Below are positions 1,457 to 36,024 of a stretch of 64,000 nucleotides of DNA, piece after piece. The stretch lies in the NCBI GenBank assembly GCA_965113315.1, contig OZ220372.1; one strand, 5' to 3'. The DNA comes from Podarcis vaucheri. Taxonomy: Eukaryota. The notes below the pieces were generated by a model. That model searched no databases and was not told the DNA's origin. It worked only from the letters and a program-made list of their open reading frames with translations. Made by a program: the position numbers and the translations under genes. Numbering within the stretch: the first letter of the stretch is position 1; every line of letters starts with the position of its first letter.

Positions 1457-2992
1457 CAGTGTTTCCCAACCGGTGTTCCGCGGCACACTAGTGTGCCGCC
1501 GGACGTTGCCTGGTGTGCCGTGGGAGGGAGGCGGGCGACTCGGGCTAATCCTCCGACGAGCTCCACCTCCAGACCCATTCCTCAAATCCTTTAACCCAGG
1601 AAGGCAGGAGGGCGGGGAGGGGGGGGGAGAAAGAGAAAAAAGAAAGGGTGGAAAAAAAGAAGGGGAAGAGAAAATATTTTTTTAAAAAAAGGAAAGAGAG
1701 GGGAAAAAGCGAGGGATGGAGGAAGGGGAAGGGGGAAGAAGATGGGGGGTCTTTGTGTATAAACAGAAGGGGAGGACAATGAAGAGGGGCGGGGCTTGGC
1801 AGGCAGCAGATAACTGGGGAGGGGGACGCGGCTGGCGGCGGCTCAAGGCAGGAAGGGAGGAGCTGCCTCGCGGAGAGTCTTGGGCTGCAGAGATTTCCCG
1901 TTCAGGAGCGCGGGAGGCCACGCCGTGGATGGGAATCTCCTCCTCCTCTTCCTCCTCTTCCTCCTCCTCCTCCAGGAGAGAGGGTGGTCCGCCCCACCGA
2001 GTCGGGCCTGCTCAAGCGTGGGAGCCTATAGTTAGAGCTCAGCTCCTTTTCTTGCCTTCCCCGCCCCCCCACGGAGCACATTTTCCTCCCCCCCAACCCC
2101 CGCATGTAGAATAGAAGCCCTCCAGCCTCCACGGTGCACAAACTCTCCCCTCTGCAACGAAGCGCTTTGTTGCATATCTTTGGTGAGGTTTTTAGGCAGT
2201 CTTGGTGCACCTTAAATCAGCGCTAATTGCGCTTGGACACAGTATTTACTTCTGAGTAGGCCCCCTTCTCCCCCCCCCCCGGTAGCACCTGACGTTGCTA
2301 TTCGTATCATCAGGTTTGTTTGTTGATAATTTAATTGTTTTAAAAGCATCATGCTAAAGAGCTCTCTCCCACCCCCAGACCCTTGGGCAAAACAGAAACA
2401 CACACATACACAAACACAGAGATTGAGCCCTGTAGGTTTTATGAAATGAATGGATTCTGAATGCCTGTTTCAGTGGCTTGTCCGCCTTAGGCTGCTGGGC
2501 CAGACACCTGTTACACGGTGCAGTCCGTAAGCTGTGAGCGCTGCTACCTGCCGCCGAGACCACGTAACGACAGTCTTGAAAGACCTACATTGGCTCCCAG
2601 TACCTTTCCGAGCACAATTCAAAGTGTTGGTGCTGACCTTTAAAGCCCTAAGCGGTTTCGGTCCAGTATACCTGAAGTAGCGTCTCCGCCACCATCGTTC
2701 AGCCCAGACACTGAGATCCAGTGCCAAGGGCCTTCTGGCAATTCCCTCACTGTGAAAAGTGAGGTTACAGGGAACCAGGCAGAGGGCCTTCTCGGTAGTG
2801 GCGCCCGCCCTGTGGAATGCCCTCCCATCAGACATCAAAGAGATAACCATTACCTTCTATGCTGTTACTATTTTTTTTATTTTTTTTTACATAAGTAAAA
2901 AGTGACCTTTCCCCATCTGGCATGGTGGTGTGCCTCGAGATTTTTTTCATGAAACAAGTGTGCCTTTGCCCAAAAAAGGTTGGGAAACACTG
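1457..2992 (+). mobile_element. Non-autonomous hAT (Charlie-like) element with captured cargo (copy A)
   Basis: TIRs CAGTGTTTCCCAACC...GGTTGGGAAACACTG. Perfect 8-bp TSD GCTTAGAT at 1449-1456 and 2993-3000. Arms shared with 7016-8332. Confidence 0.93.
2546..2846 (+). mobile_element. L2 LINE 3' ORF fragment inside hAT copy A
   Basis: Plus frame reads DHVTTVLKDLHWLPVPFRAQFKVLVLTFKAL...RAFSVVAPALWNALPSDIK with stops, which matches the L2 C-terminal LHWLPV and WNxLP motifs. Confidence 0.85.
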
Positions 2993-4525: not shown

Positions 4526-5267
4526 CCCAACAGACCTTGCAGAAGGTGTCACCCCCCACAAGGGCTAAGGTTGTGGGTGGGTGGGTGGGTGGGTGGATGA
4601 GAGAGAGAGAACAAGCAGTATTTGCCTTGTAGGACTTTCACATTCATTTATGCTCTGCTTTTAGCTTTGCACATCAAGCAAATGTTACAAAGTTACTGTA
4701 AGTATTCAATGCTCTATTATCCAAAAGAAATTAAACCAATATTGTTGCCCCTGGAACTTTTTACAGCTCAAAAATTGTGAGACATGCAATAGTTTTATGC
4801 TATTACCTTAATTTGTGAAAAGATTTAAACTGAAACTAAGAGCAACATATTGTAAAAAAAATAATACTTATTCAGAAAGCATATGCTTAAAAATGGGATT
4901 CATTACCTTGCAGTTGTGTTCCTTACAACTTTTGTATAAGGTTTAGTACTGTTAACCTGAAGTTTTGTGAAATACAAAAAAGATTAAAAGTCTAGAATCA
5001 GAAATGGAGTAGGAAAAAGGTGTGGCCTTGACTGAGGGGCAGGGAGAAAGCTTTGGAAAGAACAGGGATGTTCCTATGCCATCAAATGGAAGGGCCTGTA
5101 TTTAGGAAGGGTTAGGAAAAAGTGGAGGTGTTTGTAACAGTGGGTGGAAGCAAGCTAGTGCCAGAGGGCTTTCCAGCAGGCTTTGCTTAATGTTGTTAAT
5201 CCTATACTGTACTCTCTTACCTGGGATTACAGTTACTCTTATTAGTTGTTTTGTTTACCAGGGGGCC

Positions 5268-6205
5268 CATAGGCGCCTACTCCATGGGGCCTGAGGGGGC
5301 CCGAGCCCCCTCAAAAATTCGTTTGGGGGGCTCTGCCCCCCCCAATAATCTCGGGCGCCCCTCCATCAGAGCGCCGCCGCCGAGCATCAGCCTTTGTGGC
5401 CTTACCTGCCACGGCGTCCGCTGCACCTTCGTACCTGTAGAAGCACCCGAGCACCAGAAAGAGCGTGAGGAGCCCCATGGTGTCTGCCGCCTCTCCGCGC
5501 GCGAGAGGATCCGCAGCGCAAGACAGGGGATCGCATGCACACGAGCCAAGACACCGCACGAGCCGGGGGGGGACACGGGGGCGCGGTGCAAGCGGGCTCT
5601 ACCCAGGGCAGCAAGCGCGGAGTCCCATCCCTGCTCCCCGCCGCGCCTCCCTCGCCCTGCAAGGCGCCGCGATGCCGAAACCCTCCGGCTGCGCAACAGG
5701 CGCTCACTTCCGGGGAGGGAGCCCTGCTCTCCCCGCCTCCCTCTTCCGCGGGGCGGGCGGCCCCCGCCGAGGCGCCGCTTGGCGCAGAGACAACGGAGTT
5801 TGCTTGGCCGAGGGGCCAGGGCAGCCGTGCCGGTTGCAGCAACCCTCCTTCCCCAAAAGGGCAGCCCGCTTGCTTTGTTGGCATCTCTCGCCGCGCCTGG
5901 GAATGCCGCCGCCTCACCCAAAATGCCAAATGCTTGGAAATTCAGCTCACCTTAAAAAAATTAAAAAGGATTGCCTGCTTCAAGAGCGTGGAGGGGAATA
6001 ACTAACCCGCAAGCCACTGGGGTGGGAAGGGGGAAATGCAGCCTTGCATTAGGGAAAGAAAATCTTTAAAGAAAAACTTTAAAGAAAAAAAATCTTTAAA
6101 GAAAAACTTTAAAACTCACTAATTTTCATCTAAAATTTAGAAAACTTCCTGGGGCAGGACCCCGGTATGGACCCCCCCAATATTTTTTATAAGTCGGCGC
6201 CCCTG
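5268..6205. mobile_element. Non-autonomous TIR element (probably hAT) with captured CpG-island/first-exon cargo
   Basis: Imperfect TIRs CATAGGCGCCTACT / AGTCGGCGCCCCTG. Flanks CCAGGGGGCC and CCAGGGGCC form an imperfect TSD. The interior is GC-rich within AT-rich surroundings. Confidence 0.75.
5406..5478 (-). pseudogene. Captured first coding exon encoding a signal peptide (donor gene not identified)
   Basis: Strong Kozak context GACACCATGG, peptide MGLLTLFLVLGCFYRYEGAADAVA, then a phase-1 donor G|GTAAGG. GC-rich 5' region with an ETS-type CACTTCCGG at 5705-5713. Confidence 0.6.
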
Positions 6206-7015
6206 CCAGGGGCCCAGTGTTTCTGTGTTATCAACACATATCCTCCTATATGAGTAAATATGTTTCCGTAATATGATCTGTTACTTCAGAAGCATTTTTA
6301 TTTGCATGCAGCACACTTTAAAAACACACACAGATGTCCTGACTAGAGGCAGTGTGACTCTAAAAGTTAAAGAACATAAGCAAAAGCTACTTAGCACCCC
6401 CAACACACACTAACATTTTAAGCTGTTTGTAACAACTTAAACAAACTTCCTTGATTGGATTTATGCTAATGGATCTCCTGTAGGCATTTCTAATTCATTT
6501 ACATTTAATTTTAAGGTTGCCTCTGTTGTGTTTCCAATTCAAACTAATACCATTAACAGATAAAATGAAAGTGTGTAACAGGTCAGAAGCCACAAGATGG
6601 CAATAGTTGAAGAGCAATTTGCTTCAAGAAGGAGTTGGATTGTAGATACTACAGTGAGATTACTCCTACTATGTTATTTATATAGTGCCCATCATCTGTA
6701 GCTAGAAAGGCACTTTATGTAATTAAATATAATTTTATTTTCTGTACTGATGGGAAAAGGAGGAAATGGAGGTGAAGGGATCTATCAAAGGTGTGTGGCA
6801 GAGCAATGCATAGCACACATATCTCCTTGCAGAGAAGAATATTGGACCAAATATGGTGGATTGAGAAACCCAAATTTTAGGTCCCTTCATGTCCCTATTT
6901 TGAACACAAAGTTACTTCTGTGACAGTTCCAAGAAGTACAAAACAGGAAATGGGTATCTAGTGGATGTTTGTATGTTAAAAAGTCTTTAAGGGGCCATCA
7001 AATGGATGTTTAGAT

Positions 7016-8332
7016 CAGTGTTTCCCAACAGGTGTCCCGCGGCACACTAGTGTGTCGCGAGACGTTGCCTGGTGTGCCGTGGGAGGGAGGCGAGCGAGTC
7101 GGGCGGCGAGAGGCGGGGCGGCGGCAGCAAGGAGAGGCCGCCCAGCGCGGGGCTCTCGCCGTCTGCCTGCCTGGCTGCCTGCGTGGCGCTGACGTCACGG
7201 GGCTGTAACGTGCCCCACATAGGCACACACGGGGCGGCGAGCGAGCTCCCTCCCACATCCCATCGCCGGCTCTGCACCAGGCGGTAGAGCTCGGCGAAGT
7301 CGCCGCGCTGGAAGGCCAGCAGCGCGCGCGCCTTGCCCTGGCTCTCGCCCGCCTGCGCCTCCAGGCACGGCGCCTCGGCGTCGGGCGGCAGCGAGCCCAG
7401 GAAGCGGCCCAGCCGGCCGGGGTCGCCCGCCTGCAGCAGCGCCTCGCACACGCACGAGACCTGCTCCGCCGAGAAGCGCGGCGAGCGCGGAGGATCGGGC
7501 GCGGCGGAGGCCAGCCCCGCGCTTGGAGAGGACGCAGCAGCCGTCGCCAAACCCGATCCTCCTCCTCCTGCTCCGCCGCCGTCCTCTGGCTCTCGGCCGG
7601 GAGGAGCCTGCGGCGATGGGGCGGGCGCCAAAGTTGGCAGAAGTTGGCGCGCCTCCTCGGCAGCGCCTTCGTCCTCCTCCTCCTGCCTCTGCTCTCCTCC
7701 GGCGGCGGGGGCGCGCTGCCCTCCCCGGCCGGGGGGCTCGGTGGGGCCTGCGGGGAAGGAGGCCATGTTCGCGGCGCGCGGGATCACGGCCCCCCTCGCC
7801 CGCCTCCGGTCCGCTCCCCTCCCCCTGCGCGCTGCCCTAGCCGTGCGGGTCTCCTCCCCCTGCGCCGCCGTCCCCTTTCCACATCCTAGGAGCCGCGGTC
7901 CGCCTTCCGCCCCCGGGCCGCGGCGCGGCTCCCAGCCTGGGCTGGCCTCCGCCTCCTGGGACGCGCGCCCACCCCCGCGGCCCCCCAAACTTCGGAGCAA
8001 CTCTCCAGACGCTTCTCCCCCGCCTCGGTCTCCCTCCTTTCCACTTCTCTTCCCCCCTTCCTTCCCTCTTTCTTTCTCTTTCTCTCCCACCCGCCTTTCC
8101 TTCTATTAACTTTCCTTTCCCCTTCCCATGTAGAACAGTCCCTGCAAATAAAAACCTAGCATATTTGAAAGAGGGATGCTAGCCTAACCATTACCTTCTA
8201 TGCTGTTACTATTTTTTTATTTTTTTTTACATAAGTAAAAAGTGACCTTTCCCCATCTGGCATGGTGGTGTGCCTCGAGATTTTTTTCATGAAACAAGTG
8301 TGCCTTTGCCCAAAAAAGGTTGGGAAACACTG
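7016..8332 (+). mobile_element. Non-autonomous hAT (Charlie-like) element with captured SIX5 fragment (copy B)
   Basis: Same TIRs as copy A. Perfect 8-bp TSD GTTTAGAT at 7008-7015 and 8333-8340. Confidence 0.93.
7266..7766 (-). pseudogene. SIX5: Transposon-captured SIX5 exon-1 fragment (N-terminus plus N-terminal half of the SIX domain, no homeodomain)
   Basis: MASFPAGP...EEEDEGAAEEARQLLPTL...RFSAEQVSCVCEALLQAGDPGRLGRFLGSLPP...KARALLAFQRGDFAELYRLVQSR parallels SIX5 as I recall it (MATLPAEP...EEEARQLLQTL...RFSPEQVACVCEALLQAG...RARALVAFQRGEYAELYRLLESR). Similarity stops abruptly at about 7266. Confidence 0.88.
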
Positions 8333-9267
8333 GTTTAGATACTATCTCCAATAAAAGGGTTATATATAATGTGGTGGAGTTGTGCTGAAGTCCATATGTT
8401 TTGGAAACTAGTGATTACAGAGAGCTGTACACTTAGAAGTATAAATGTGATTGCAGACCCTAAACTATGTATTTTGTCATTTTCTTTTTAATAAATGTAA
8501 TGCAGTTTTTCTATGGAAACAGTTAATTATATATATTCTGGTAGCTGCACAATTAGTAATCACTCAGTGCTGGAAAGGCACTTCATGTTATATCCTTGAT
8601 AACTGGTTCAAGGAAGTTATGTTCATTGCTATCTCAAATTGACATGTAATCTTTGTGTGCCATTAGGTGATGCTGATGCTTCTGATCTCACCTCTGTTTG
8701 GAGGTTATATTTAATAACAGTCACATGGGTGGCAAATCCCTTCAAAATATTATTTTATTTGGCAGTGTCTGTAAACAGGAAAGCCTTTCTCCTCCCCCCA
8801 TTTCCTTCACTGTATAATGTGTTTGTATTCTTATGCCCCATTTATAATTTCAGAATTTCCATTCAGTTCTTCCCTTGGATGGTTTTCCTAAAATACTTAC
8901 AGTTGAAAGAGAGTGGGGAACAAGATGAAGTCAAGAAAACAGAGACAGACTGTGCACCTATTCAGCCACATGTGCATAGGCATAGAGTTGGCATTGCCTA
9001 ATTAAAGCCATTTGCTGCCAAAAAGGCAAGATGGAGCAAAGCCACCTAACATCACATATTACCTAAGGATAGTAATTTATGCAGAAGAGTGTTGCTGATT
9101 ATCTTAATTGGTACTGAGTTAATAGCTATATAAGAGAACTACACCTTGGGCAATTGCTAACTGTAATGGTTTGAAGATGTGCTTATCATCAACACAAGTG
9201 CAGTGATTATGCGCTCAGGCAAACTTTCAGTTTTGTTAAGCTCTTACATGTCTTACTGCCATGGCTT

Positions 9268-21286: not shown

Positions 21287-21560
21287 CTAAATAAAGATAA
21301 TACACAAAATATATTATTCTCCATAATACATACAATTAGAATTAAGTAAAACAGTAGTAATAAAATTAAATGGGAAAAGTGGTATGGAAAACAGGCAAGT
21401 GTACTACACAAACGCATCAAAACCCCTACAAATTAGAAGCATTTTAAGAACTTAGGGAATTCAAAGGAAGAGCTGCTCCATAAGACAATAACCAGTTCTC
21501 TTCAGAAGGTGACTGATGAATATTTCAATGGAGGTGACTCAGATATTCAACTCTGAGTCA

Positions 21561-21697
21561 TAGCATTTCCCAACCTTGGGCCTCCAGCTGTTTTTTGGAC
21601 TACAACTCCCATAATCCTCAGCTAGGAAGACCAGTGGTCAGGGATAATGGGAATTGTAGTTCGAAAACAGCTGGAGGCCCAAGGTTGGGAAACACTG
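21561..21697. mobile_element. Palindromic hAT MITE with the same TIR type as copies A and B
   Basis: tAGcaTTTCCCAACCTTGGGCCTCCAGCTGTTT...GACTACAACTCCCAT / ATGGGAATTGTAGT...AAACAGCTGGAGGCCCAAGGTTGGGAAACACTG. Confidence 0.8.
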
Positions 21698-25961: not shown

Positions 25962-26954
25962 TAATTTCAAGTTTCAAACTATATTATGAAGCATCATGTC
26001 TTTATTGGTTGAAAGAGTGGATAAAATTAGAAAACACAGAATTGTTAGATTTGGAAGGGTTCGATAACAGATTTGGATGGCACGCCTATTTATGGTGTGA
26101 GAAGAAGAAAAACCATAAAGGTTTTGAGAACCACATCTTCCGGAGATCTTTAATTGAAATATGGGATAGGTATAAAAACCTATTAGAACCAAGAGTCCCA
26201 CACTGGTTATCTCCGTTAGAGGTTAAAGTGTAAAGTGTAAAGAAAATCAATATGAGAGGGAATTGGATTACATATGGTGAGTTGATAGCAAAAGAAGGAG
26301 GAAAATGGAAAATGAAACCTTATGAACAAGTAAAAAAGTATGTATATGATTGGTTGCATTATTTTCAAGTAAATGAAATGTTTAAAAAGGATTTTAGAGA
26401 GAATGGATATGTTGAAAAAGATTCAAAATTTCAAATAGAAATAATAAATAATGATTGTAAAATTTTATCAAAAATGTACAAAATGTTGTTGGAATGGCAT
26501 ACAAAGGATGAGGAAGTCAAGTCGGTTATGATACATTGGCCCAAAGATGGAAAAAGGAGGAATTACAAACCCTGGAAGAATGGAGAATGAAAATGATAGA
26601 CTATGCAGAATTGGATAAACTAACTGGGAAGATTAGATATCAACGAGACCATAAGTTCATCGAGGACTGGGGAAAATTTGTAGAGTATCTGAAAAATATA
26701 TGTGATGAGCAAACAACGCTCGTGGGATTTCAAGAAGCTCTGTGAAAGTTTGAGGAGTATTGTAAAAAAGAAAATAAGATTGGGAAGGTATATAAAAAGG
26801 CAGTATTAAATTTAGGAAATGCGTAACTAAAAATTAATTACGGATGATTGGCAGATAAGCTGAAGGAAGTCCATAAGAGATAATTTGTGATAAACTTTTG
26901 ATATGGTATTATATGTATATTGTATTGAAAACTAATAAAAATTATTTTTTTAAA
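25962..26954 (+). mobile_element. L1-clade LINE 3' fragment with internal deletion
   Basis: FKLYYEASCLYWLKEWIKLEN...GWHAYLW is homologous to the L1 at 1-1330. AATAAA at 26934, A-tail, and TSD AAAAAGGTTCAGT (25949-25961 / 26955-26967). Confidence 0.9.
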
Positions 26955-27601
26955 AAAAAGGTTCAGTCAAGACCGAGGCCCAGTGAAAACAAGCATCTTG
27001 TTGTGCAGTAAAATATACACTGAACTATTTTAAACTGTAGGTTGGAAACACCATGTCTGAATGATTCCCCCCATTTAAAAAAAAAGCATCCTGGCATGGG
27101 TCGTCACATATTACATTAAATAAGTGTAGAATCTTTGTACTTGTGTATACCAACAATTGAGCTGTACATTTGTAACATTTTTCACATGTAACATTCAATG
27201 AATGTGCAGTCCATGTACTCATGTACACAATAGTTGAGATGTACAAATCAGCAAGTGTACAGTCTTTCACACAAGCCCTTGCACATGCCTTGTACTACCA
27301 GTTTGGAGATGTGTTCAGTGTTAAGGAGGGAACAAGTCTTAAATGTCAGTAGTGATACGTGTGCAAATCTTTATTCCTCAACCTACAATCTGAAATGATG
27401 TAGTCCCGGAACAGTTTGACCATGCAAAAGGTTGTTGATTCTGATCAGATATCAGGAACACATAGCCAAGGCAGGCTTGCAGATGAGCTTGAGAAATTTG
27501 TAAAGATCACCAATGTTTTTAGCAACTCCCAAAACGTGATACAGCATAACCACTAGATTATATTATAAAAGCACATTTTTTAAAAAGAAAGAGAACAATA
27601 C

Positions 27602-34881: not shown

Positions 34882-36024
34882 TCAAAATAAAAAAATTCCT
34901 TCCTGTAGCACCTTAAAGACCAACTAAGTTAGTTCTTGGTATAAGCTTTCGTGTGCATGCACACTTCTTCAGATACACTGAAACAGAAGTTGCCAGATCC
35001 TTCTATATATAGAGAGAAGCAGTCAATGTACAAGTCCAGTGTGGTATTGCGTCCATCAGGAGGGGTCCATGTGGAGTCCCCTTTTGTGTAACACTTTTTC
35101 AGTGGTAGTTGGTGGTCAGTGTTCTGTTGGGAGGGTGGTTGTTGTTCTCCAGTGGGTTGAGAGGTGTTGTGTTGTGAAGTTGTTGTTTGTTCTGATTTGT
35201 CTTGTTGTTGTGTGTGTTGAAAATACTCCTTCAGGCGAAAACGGCGGAAAAATGCTTCCAAGTCCCCGTAGAACTGGATCATGTGTGGGGATTTGGCAGG
35301 GCAGAATGACAGACCACGTGAAAGGACTGATTCCTCAGCTGGGCTGAGTGCTTGCTGTGAGAGATTGACAATATTGTTGATCTTGTTTTGATTAGTAGCC
35401 TGTAGGTTGGAAAGGTTAGAGAGTTTCTTGTTTTTCTGTTTTTTCAGTAGCTCCAGTTGAGAGTGGTAAATGTTTTGTTTTTCCTTTTGGAACTCTTGCC
35501 AAGCTTGGTGGTTCCTGATAGAGTTGTCTAATACAAGGAGTTCCTCCTTTATTAGCTTCTGTTTAGAGTAGAGAACGCTGATCAGATGTTTGAGCAGCTT
35601 CTTAGAGAAAGTGTTGCATAGTTTTCTTGCATATTCAGTGGGATACGTGGATTGTAGAGGGTTCTTAATTCTAAGACCCTTGGGTATAATGTCCAGGTTC
35701 TTGCATTTAGTAAGAAAGAAGATATCAGTCTGTACCTGTGCAAGTTTCTTGGTGAGGTTGATGGACTTCCATTTCATGCGGCTCAATGTGGTGCCTTCCA
35801 TGGTTCCAGTTACAGATGGGTAGCCGTGTTAATTCAATGTACAAGTCCAGTGTGGTATTGCGTCCATCAGGAGGGGTCCATGTGGAGTCCCTTTTTGTGT
35901 AACACTTTTTCAGTGGTAGTTGGTGGTCAGTGTTCTGTTGGGAGGGTGGTTGTTGTTCTCCAGTGGGTTGAGAGGTGTTGTGTTGTGAAGTTGTTGTTTG
36001 TTACGGCTACCCATCTGTAACTGG
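34882..36024 (-). mobile_element. Penelope-like element, internally deleted and rearranged
   Basis: ORF 34929-35801 encodes the PLE N-terminal region (FLTKCKNLDIIPKGL, IVNLSQQALSPAEESVLSRGLSFCP, FFRRFRLKEYF, WTPPDGRNTTLDLYIDCF), fused directly to pseudo-LTR sequence with no RT or GIY-YIG. 13-bp TSD AACCTAGTTATGG (34869-34881 / 36025-36037). Confidence 0.88.
34939..34976 (-). ncRNA. Minimal hammerhead ribozyme in the Penelope pseudo-LTR
   Basis: GUAU-CUGAAGA-A-GUGUGCAUGCACAC-GAAA-GCUUA-UAC: CUGANGA and GAAA cores, palindromic stem II, very short palindromic stem III (AGCU), and stem I GUA/UAC. Confidence 0.72.

Follow-up and report, generated by a model that had tools for sequence, protein, structure and literature searches.

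A probable Pack-hAT element carrying the 5' end of SIX5 in a wall lizard genome

How did the beginning of a developmental gene come to lie in an open reading frame that ends inside a transposon? The frame is found near the start of a 64,000-nucleotide stretch of Podarcis vaucheri DNA (GenBank assembly GCA_965113315.1, contig OZ220372.1), which was analysed as a whole and is called the window here. We propose that positions 7016-8332 constitute a non-autonomous Pack-hAT, a kind of Pack-TIR, with 858 bp from SIX5, and that this cargo was captured once and then amplified, the window copy now decaying neutrally; to this reading we assign a probability of roughly 0.85. In keeping with the definition of a Pack-TIR, terminal inverted repeats (TIRs) and a target-site duplication (TSD) enclose a segment of a host gene, whose parent was identified by protein comparison as lacertid SIX5. 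The ends of the element and of a related one in the window are as follows.

7008-7015, no strand: left TSD, GTTTAGAT; the same 8-mer stands at 8333-8340.
7016-7104, plus strand: left hAT arm with the TIR CAGTGTTTCCCAAC at 7016-7029; 92% identical to 1457-1545 of the sister element.
8187-8332, plus strand: right hAT arm with the TIR at 8319-8332 on the minus strand; 146/147 identical to 2846-2992.
8333-8340, no strand: right TSD, GTTTAGAT; a perfect copy of 7008-7015.
1457-2992, plus strand: sister element with the same arms, another cargo and the TSD GCTTAGAT on both sides; recognised by arm identity.

An 8-bp TSD together with short inverted repeats beginning with CAG (YARNG) is the signature of the hAT superfamily, whose transposases combine a BED finger with a hAT dimerisation domain and whose target consensus is nTnnnnAn. 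The TIR of the SIX5-carrying element begins with CAG and agrees at 14/14 positions between both ends; in other copies a 15th base pairs as well (7030 A>C). Exact matches to the TIR in the window number five, where 0.75 are expected by chance at up to two mismatches. GTTTAGAT agrees with the target consensus and GCTTAGAT does so at one of its two positions; three insertion sites, among them that of a sibling copy in another species, have nTCTAARn in common on the minus strand. A transposase is absent from the element, seven other large open reading frames of the window are without a Pfam match, and no autonomous hAT partner was identified there.

The sister element has its left 89 nt and its right 147 nt in common with 7016-8332, at the identities given above, and an entirely different interior. 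Constant ends around different interiors in these two elements argue for a family of fixed ends with exchangeable middles. Among the 1.3 kb of cargo in the sister element are a tract rich in GA, a segment richer in CpG (o/e 0.50 overall) and, at about 2570-2845, a fragment resembling a squamate SINE. A GA-rich tract common to both elements was considered and rejected, the match being limited to 57 nt of low complexity at 77% identity. Elsewhere in the window, a MITE-like unit of about 138 bp (21560-21697) terminates in the same CAGTGTTTCCCAACC, but its inverted arms are long (TTGGGCCTCCAGCTG...) and its interior is another one; it may represent a related short family that uses the same transposase as the SIX5-carrying hAT.

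What is the cargo between these arms? Its coding part is described by two overlapping features.

7047-7766, minus strand: chimeric open frame of 239 codons plus stop; the part after the junction is not beyond chance.
7266-7766, minus strand: SIX5 codons 1-167, comprising the N-terminal region and SD positions 1-70 of 113 (helix 1 to about helix 3-4), as judged by Pfam, the alignment to P. muralis SIX5 and the structure 4EGC.

The frame opens with an ATG at 7766-7764 and closes with a TAG at 7049-7047; the minus strand ahead of the ATG (8184-7767) is rich in GC and purines. Residues 98-170 match positions 1-70 of the 113 of the Pfam SIX1_SD profile (E 3.7e-13, 50 bits against a cut-off of 27 bits), and the closest solved structure is the SIX1 chain of the SIX1-EYA2 crystal 4EGC (E 3.7e-13). 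Residues 1-167 are identical to P. muralis SIX5 (P0179) at 157/164 positions (95.7%), without a frameshift, and show 94% identity to the SIX5 proteins of P. raffonei and Zootoca and 64% to that of a snake. A search with the same residues against 1.84 billion representative proteins brought up SIX5 in full length from a snake and a marsupial, as partial models from tuatara, Varanus and a turtle, and in addition a protein of 380 residues with 90% identity; a second protein search supplied the genuine lacertid SIX5 proteins of Podarcis muralis (927 aa), P. raffonei (928 aa) and Zootoca vivipara (921 aa), which possess a homeodomain. The best match of the fragment is thus to SIX5 rather than to SIX4 or SIX1, the top full-length matches being squamate SIX5.

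The homology ends at 7266/7265, after FAELYRLVQSR, inside both exon 1 and the SD domain: genuine SIX5 proteins continue with PFGAPHHPF (PFGAPHHPFLQDLY...), the window copy with RWDVGGSS. Compared with a complete SIX5, the fragment is devoid of SD positions 71-113, the homeodomain and the entire C-terminal region; its portion of the SD includes helix 1, and helices 5-6 lie outside it. Base composition sets the segment apart as well, with a GC content of 0.77-0.78 and a CpG o/e of 0.95-0.99 over 7266-8030, against a CpG o/e of 0.06-0.14 in the flanks and 0.30 in the whole window. A first-pass annotation of this DNA had described the ATG at 7766, a SIX5-type N-terminus followed by the first half of the SIX domain to about 7266, a frame without stops or frameshifts up to a stop at 7047 in the transposon arm, abundant CpGs and the absence of a homeodomain. 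Profile, lacertid alignment, frame and composition agree with it on all of these, and between SIX5 and SIX4, which it had named together as possible best matches, SIX5 itself leads, ahead of SIX4 and SIX1.

Where the captured segment begins and ends is less evident from the protein alone, and three further features were delimited with the help of public sequencing runs, in which four organisms match the stretch.

7105-7265, plus strand: GC-rich transposon-internal sequence with a TGACGTCA motif, forming the last 72 codons of the chimeric frame; assigned by depth, the joint 7207->8262 and the sibling copy A0A670I980.
7767-8123, minus strand: 357 nt upstream of the ATG, inferred SIX5 5'UTR/promoter; in the depth class of the SIX5 part, with contigs ending or switching at 8123.
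8124-8186, plus strand: AT-rich piece of 63 nt, the inner right part of the transposon; found in other contexts (run X15, record 5) and skipped in the SIX5-cargo contig of X15.

On the left side, the summed contig depth falls in steps from 2.1 x 10^5 (7067-7147) over 6.5 x 10^4 (7148-7228) and 8.6 x 10^3 (7229-7309) to 822, such that 7105-7265 exceeds the SIX5 part 10- to 260-fold in depth. Of the joints seen in DNA and RNA runs, the one from 7207 to 8262 has the best support and represents the common short, MITE-like form of the family. Judging by this stepped depth and this joint, 7105-7265 is mostly inner sequence of a longer hAT progenitor, and not the unrelated cargo for which it had been taken at first; it occurs in the A0A670I980 copy, too. 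The same two observations led us to reject the idea that 7105-7265 is a second captured promoter.

On the right side, many contigs end or switch at 8123. The SIX5 block had originally been drawn to 8184, but its actual end is 8123, since 8124-8186 is found in other contexts of the family. The captured block 7266-8123 thus measures 858 bp, 501 bp of it coding and 357 bp upstream. Within the upstream part, 7767-8030 has a GC content of 0.78 and a CpG o/e of 0.99, with a purine-rich tract beyond, and the translation of A0A670I980 runs through the region 7767-8123. Its co-amplification with the SIX5 codons makes the SIX5 locus the putative source of 7767-8123. Beyond 8123, SIX5-cargo copies vary: the form that predominates in organism B (depth about 1500) runs on for at least 181 nt unlike the window, and another SIX5-cargo contig joins 8123 to 8187. 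Structural variants exist within the SIX5-cargo subfamily, and the segment captured at first may have extended further.

Is this locus unique? The first-pass annotation regarded it as one young duplication and asked for other copies with the same junction. Such a copy exists in Podarcis muralis, where the UniRef entry A0A670I980 (P0001; 380 aa) proved, in a tblastn comparison with the window, to be the translation of another copy of the same chimera. From the purine-rich segment upstream it passes through SIX5 and an identical RRWDVGGSS junction to the arm and the TIR (VCRGTPVGKHW), and then continues into a flank unrelated to that of the window. The TSD-like octamer following its TIR differs at both variable ends (GTCTAAAG versus ATCTAAAC), and relative to the window the frame shifts near the ATG and again after the junction. 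As independent copies have the same junction between SIX5 and transposon, the capture happened once. Its listing as a gene, under the name 'SIX1 N-terminal SD domain-containing protein', is probably an artefact of annotation. In a search with a 347-residue frame, within the length filter of that search, A0A670I980 was the only chimeric sibling, the other matches being genuine SIX5 fragments; it is also the one further SIX5-cargo copy for which an independent TSD was observed.

The extent of the amplification can be gauged from contig k-mer depth relative to single-copy flank, a rough measure in which depth is not a copy number. In DNA contigs of organism A (run X2), with a flank depth of 17.5, a 445-nt contig covering 7240-7684 with seven differences has a depth of 822, about 47 times the flank. 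In those of organism B (run X4), with a flank depth of 12, the segments 8002-8123 (no differences) and 7555-7644 (two differences) have depths of about 1500-1600, about 130 times the flank. Toward the transposon ends the summed depth reaches 2-3 x 10^5. The X2 contig passes the 7265 junction by 26 letters only, below the 31-letter rule. Still, a long and specific contig at 47 times flank depth means that the SIX5 cargo cannot be single-copy, and the contig depths suggest about 47 SIX5-cargo copies in one species and about 130 in another. Together with the shared junction of A0A670I980, these depths show an amplified subfamily in place of the single duplication.

Multiple copies also bear on the most trivial account of the locus, an assembly artefact or the true SIX5 gene. 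Among the contigs listed, none bridges the junctions between flank and TIR at this locus, as such an account would have it. However, the TSD is perfect and the TIRs are present, a P. muralis protein model and contigs from further samples and species show the same chimera independently, and genuine lacertid SIX5 is a protein of 921-928 residues with a homeodomain, so that we regard this account as practically negligible.

Could the 239-codon frame be a new gene, encoding a truncated SIX5 that retains SD helix 1 and titrates EYA cofactors? The first-pass annotation had raised a truncated SIX protein as a product should the locus be transcribed, and in its favor the ATG and the open frame are intact, and the residues aligned to SIX1 in 4EGC include helix 1, which EYA2 contacts in the six-helix SD (PMC4901127). 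Yet an SD cut at position 70 of 113 is unlikely to adopt a globular fold, and an open tail of this kind can arise by chance: 35% of shuffled versions of the 72 codons after the junction are without a stop, and the cargo has open stretches of 205-332 codons in all six frames. Other copies are frameshifted, in A0A670I980 as described and in part of the organism B copies by a 1-nt deletion at 7479.

The substitutions in the window copy tell the same story. At least 18 of the positions listed carry a private change, that is, one against essentially all other copies. Eleven of these 18 are CpG in the other copies and TpG or CpA in the window copy, which has lost about 7.5% of its CpGs compared with a change of about 0.7% at other sites; this CpG-biased loss is typical of methylated DNA that is free of constraint. 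SIX5 codons contain seven of the 18, five non-synonymous and two synonymous, and two of these seven, L143Q and A144G, alter conserved SD residues in the ESLAKARA motif, which is invariant in all five SIX5 proteins compared. Moreover, four of the seven mismatches of the window copy to P. muralis SIX5 are private changes, and the subfamily consensus is thus still closer to the parent SIX5. A gene for a truncated SIX5 is therefore highly improbable. With frameshifted siblings, changed conserved residues and a tail open by chance, a maintained protein product is unlikely; most likely, the window copy has no protein function. Its intact frame is explained by GC richness and youth and is no evidence of coding. 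That the insertion is young, as had been supposed from the beginning, agrees with its near-full CpG content and with the right arm, 146/147 identical to that of the sister element.

An effect could instead be exerted without a protein. The dispersed SIX5-cargo copies might act through RNA or chromatin, either because the captured CpG-island promoter drives transcripts or because sense, antisense or small RNAs modulate SIX5, as has been proposed for the parent genes of Pack-MULEs. The cargo does hold the region just 5' of the ATG, with a CpG o/e of about 1, and the P. muralis gene model was built on a sibling copy. Many Pack-TIRs are transcribed, often as chimeras (Tan et al., PMC8277862). In organism B, 12% of the RNA run X23 yielded a few reads on 7310-7876, and those in 7310-7633 always have the first mate on the plus strand. 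These reads, however, carry letters of the parent and of other copies and cannot be separated from parent SIX5 mRNA, and no read crosses 7265 among those listed from this 12% of the run. The CpG decay at about 10 times the non-CpG rate likewise speaks for germline methylation and against a segment kept as an active island. A 1140-nt contig of a SIX5-cargo copy comes from X15, which may be an RNA run, and among transcripts the family's short form is frequent in either orientation. On balance, we consider action through RNA or chromatin unlikely. Any effect of the window copy would come from the CpG-island promoter fragment or from SIX5-homologous RNA.

The most far-reaching version would have some SIX5-cargo copies transcribed and acting in trans on SIX5/EYA by antisense or small RNAs or by helix-1 peptides, within what would be the most amplified gene-fragment DNA transposon of animals. 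We consider this very unlikely; if true, wall lizards would owe to a transposon a regulator of a developmental gene that is specific to their lineage.

What can be said about how the element arose? According to the abortive gap-repair and FoSTeST models, capture proceeds through template switching. In the scenario that we favor, the middle of a longer hAT element would have been replaced by 858 bp of SIX5, about 357 bp preceding the ATG together with the first 167 codons of exon 1, presumably through template switching during double-strand-break repair or replication. The chimeric element would then have been mobilised by a hAT transposase supplied in trans; its copies have come to number roughly 50-130, by contig depth, in two or more related species. 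The window copy has since decayed neutrally, with the CpG loss of methylated DNA and with amino-acid changes at conserved SD residues, its frame being open only through youth and a GC content of 75%.

As the fragment lies within exon 1 and comprises no splice junction, it does not by itself distinguish a DNA from an RNA template, and its confinement to exon 1 and a possible 5'UTR, without an intron, would also suit a copy made from SIX5 mRNA or cDNA. There is no poly-A though, the 3' side of the fragment ends in mid-exon, 357 nt with a purine-rich tract would make a long 5'UTR, and the documented route of Pack-TIRs is DNA template switching (PMC8277862). An mRNA template is thus quite improbable and a DNA-level origin of the fragment likely. 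A processed retrocopy was rejected, given the missing poly-A and the presence of TIRs and an 8-bp TSD. SIX5 normally adjoins DMPK, and among the open reading frames of the window none resembling DMPK was noticed; the fragment, with its incomplete SD, lies within a transposon away from the SIX5 locus, although its first 167 residues are 94-96% identical to lacertid SIX5.

How does this element relate to known captures? Internally deleted hAT derivatives of the Ac/Ds type keep their ends and have a middle of filler DNA, attributed to template switching in abortive gap repair. The SIX5-carrying element likewise has foreign DNA between retained transposon ends, with a mechanism that we infer to be similar, but where the filler of those derivatives is usually short, here it is 858 bp of a gene. 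As in the Pack-MULEs and Pack-TYPE elements of plants, a gene fragment is enclosed by TIRs, GC-rich 5' portions of genes are preferred and the chimeric frames are for the most part without function; unlike these Mutator and CACTA elements of another kingdom, with TSDs of 9 bp and 3 bp, the SIX5-carrying element is a hAT with a TSD of 8 bp.

Among animals, a survey of 100 genomes counted 370 Pack-TIRs, 208 of them hAT and four multicopy, the multicopy ones tending to GC-rich captures (PMC8277862). One of these, Pack-hAT-N8_XT, carries the 5'UTR of CAPSL in Xenopus tropicalis and is found on three chromosomes (Tan et al. 2021, PMC8277862). Like the multicopy Pack-hATs of animals, the SIX5-carrying element is non-autonomous, has both ends and a TSD, holds GC-rich cargo derived from a host gene's 5' end and, once the capture had been made, spread to sites whose TSDs differ. 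In contrast to Pack-hAT-N8_XT, it carries the coding sequence of a homeobox gene together with its upstream region, and it has about 50-130 copies, as estimated from contig depth, in two species, an apparent copy number far above the published animal cases. Lizards are not mentioned in the main text of the survey (PMC8277862), and the literature searched for hAT capture in Podarcis or lacertids contained no description of such a family.

Plants are well known for gene fragments captured by DNA transposons; in animals such captures are documented, too, though almost always as single copies. Here, the promoter-proximal region and the first coding part of SIX5, captured a single time, have come to occupy tens or hundreds of loci in two or more lizard species. 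The value of the case lies mainly in this amplification and in the family-wide pattern, and less in the SIX5 frame. It makes these lizards a natural system for studying how hAT elements acquire promoter regions, and their copies allow one to ask at what rate CpG islands, once captured, fall silent and decay, and whether dispersed modules of promoter and first exon seed new transcripts. For annotation, the window copy should be masked as a transposon and not be entered as a SIX5-like gene, as happened in the public model of the sibling copy.

Some further observations concern the surroundings of the element. The single-copy contigs of the left flank in X2 and X4 stop matching exactly at 7015, each continuing with 229 letters that were not aligned to the window; this may reflect an empty or different allele, and hence a polymorphic or lineage-specific insertion, or an effect of a filter. 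To the right, 8341-8600 is barely covered by contigs, and in organism A a single-copy contig passes directly from 8419 to 8718 and so lacks 298 nt of the window (8420-8717), an indel or insertion difference beside the element. Upstream lies a GC-rich kilobase (5001-6205, GC 0.61) with several overlapping long open reading frames on both strands and no Pfam match. Farther downstream, 26001-27000 and 35001-36000 show strong strand skews (GC skew 0.42 and 0.33; AT skew -0.28), which are probably due to simple repeats.
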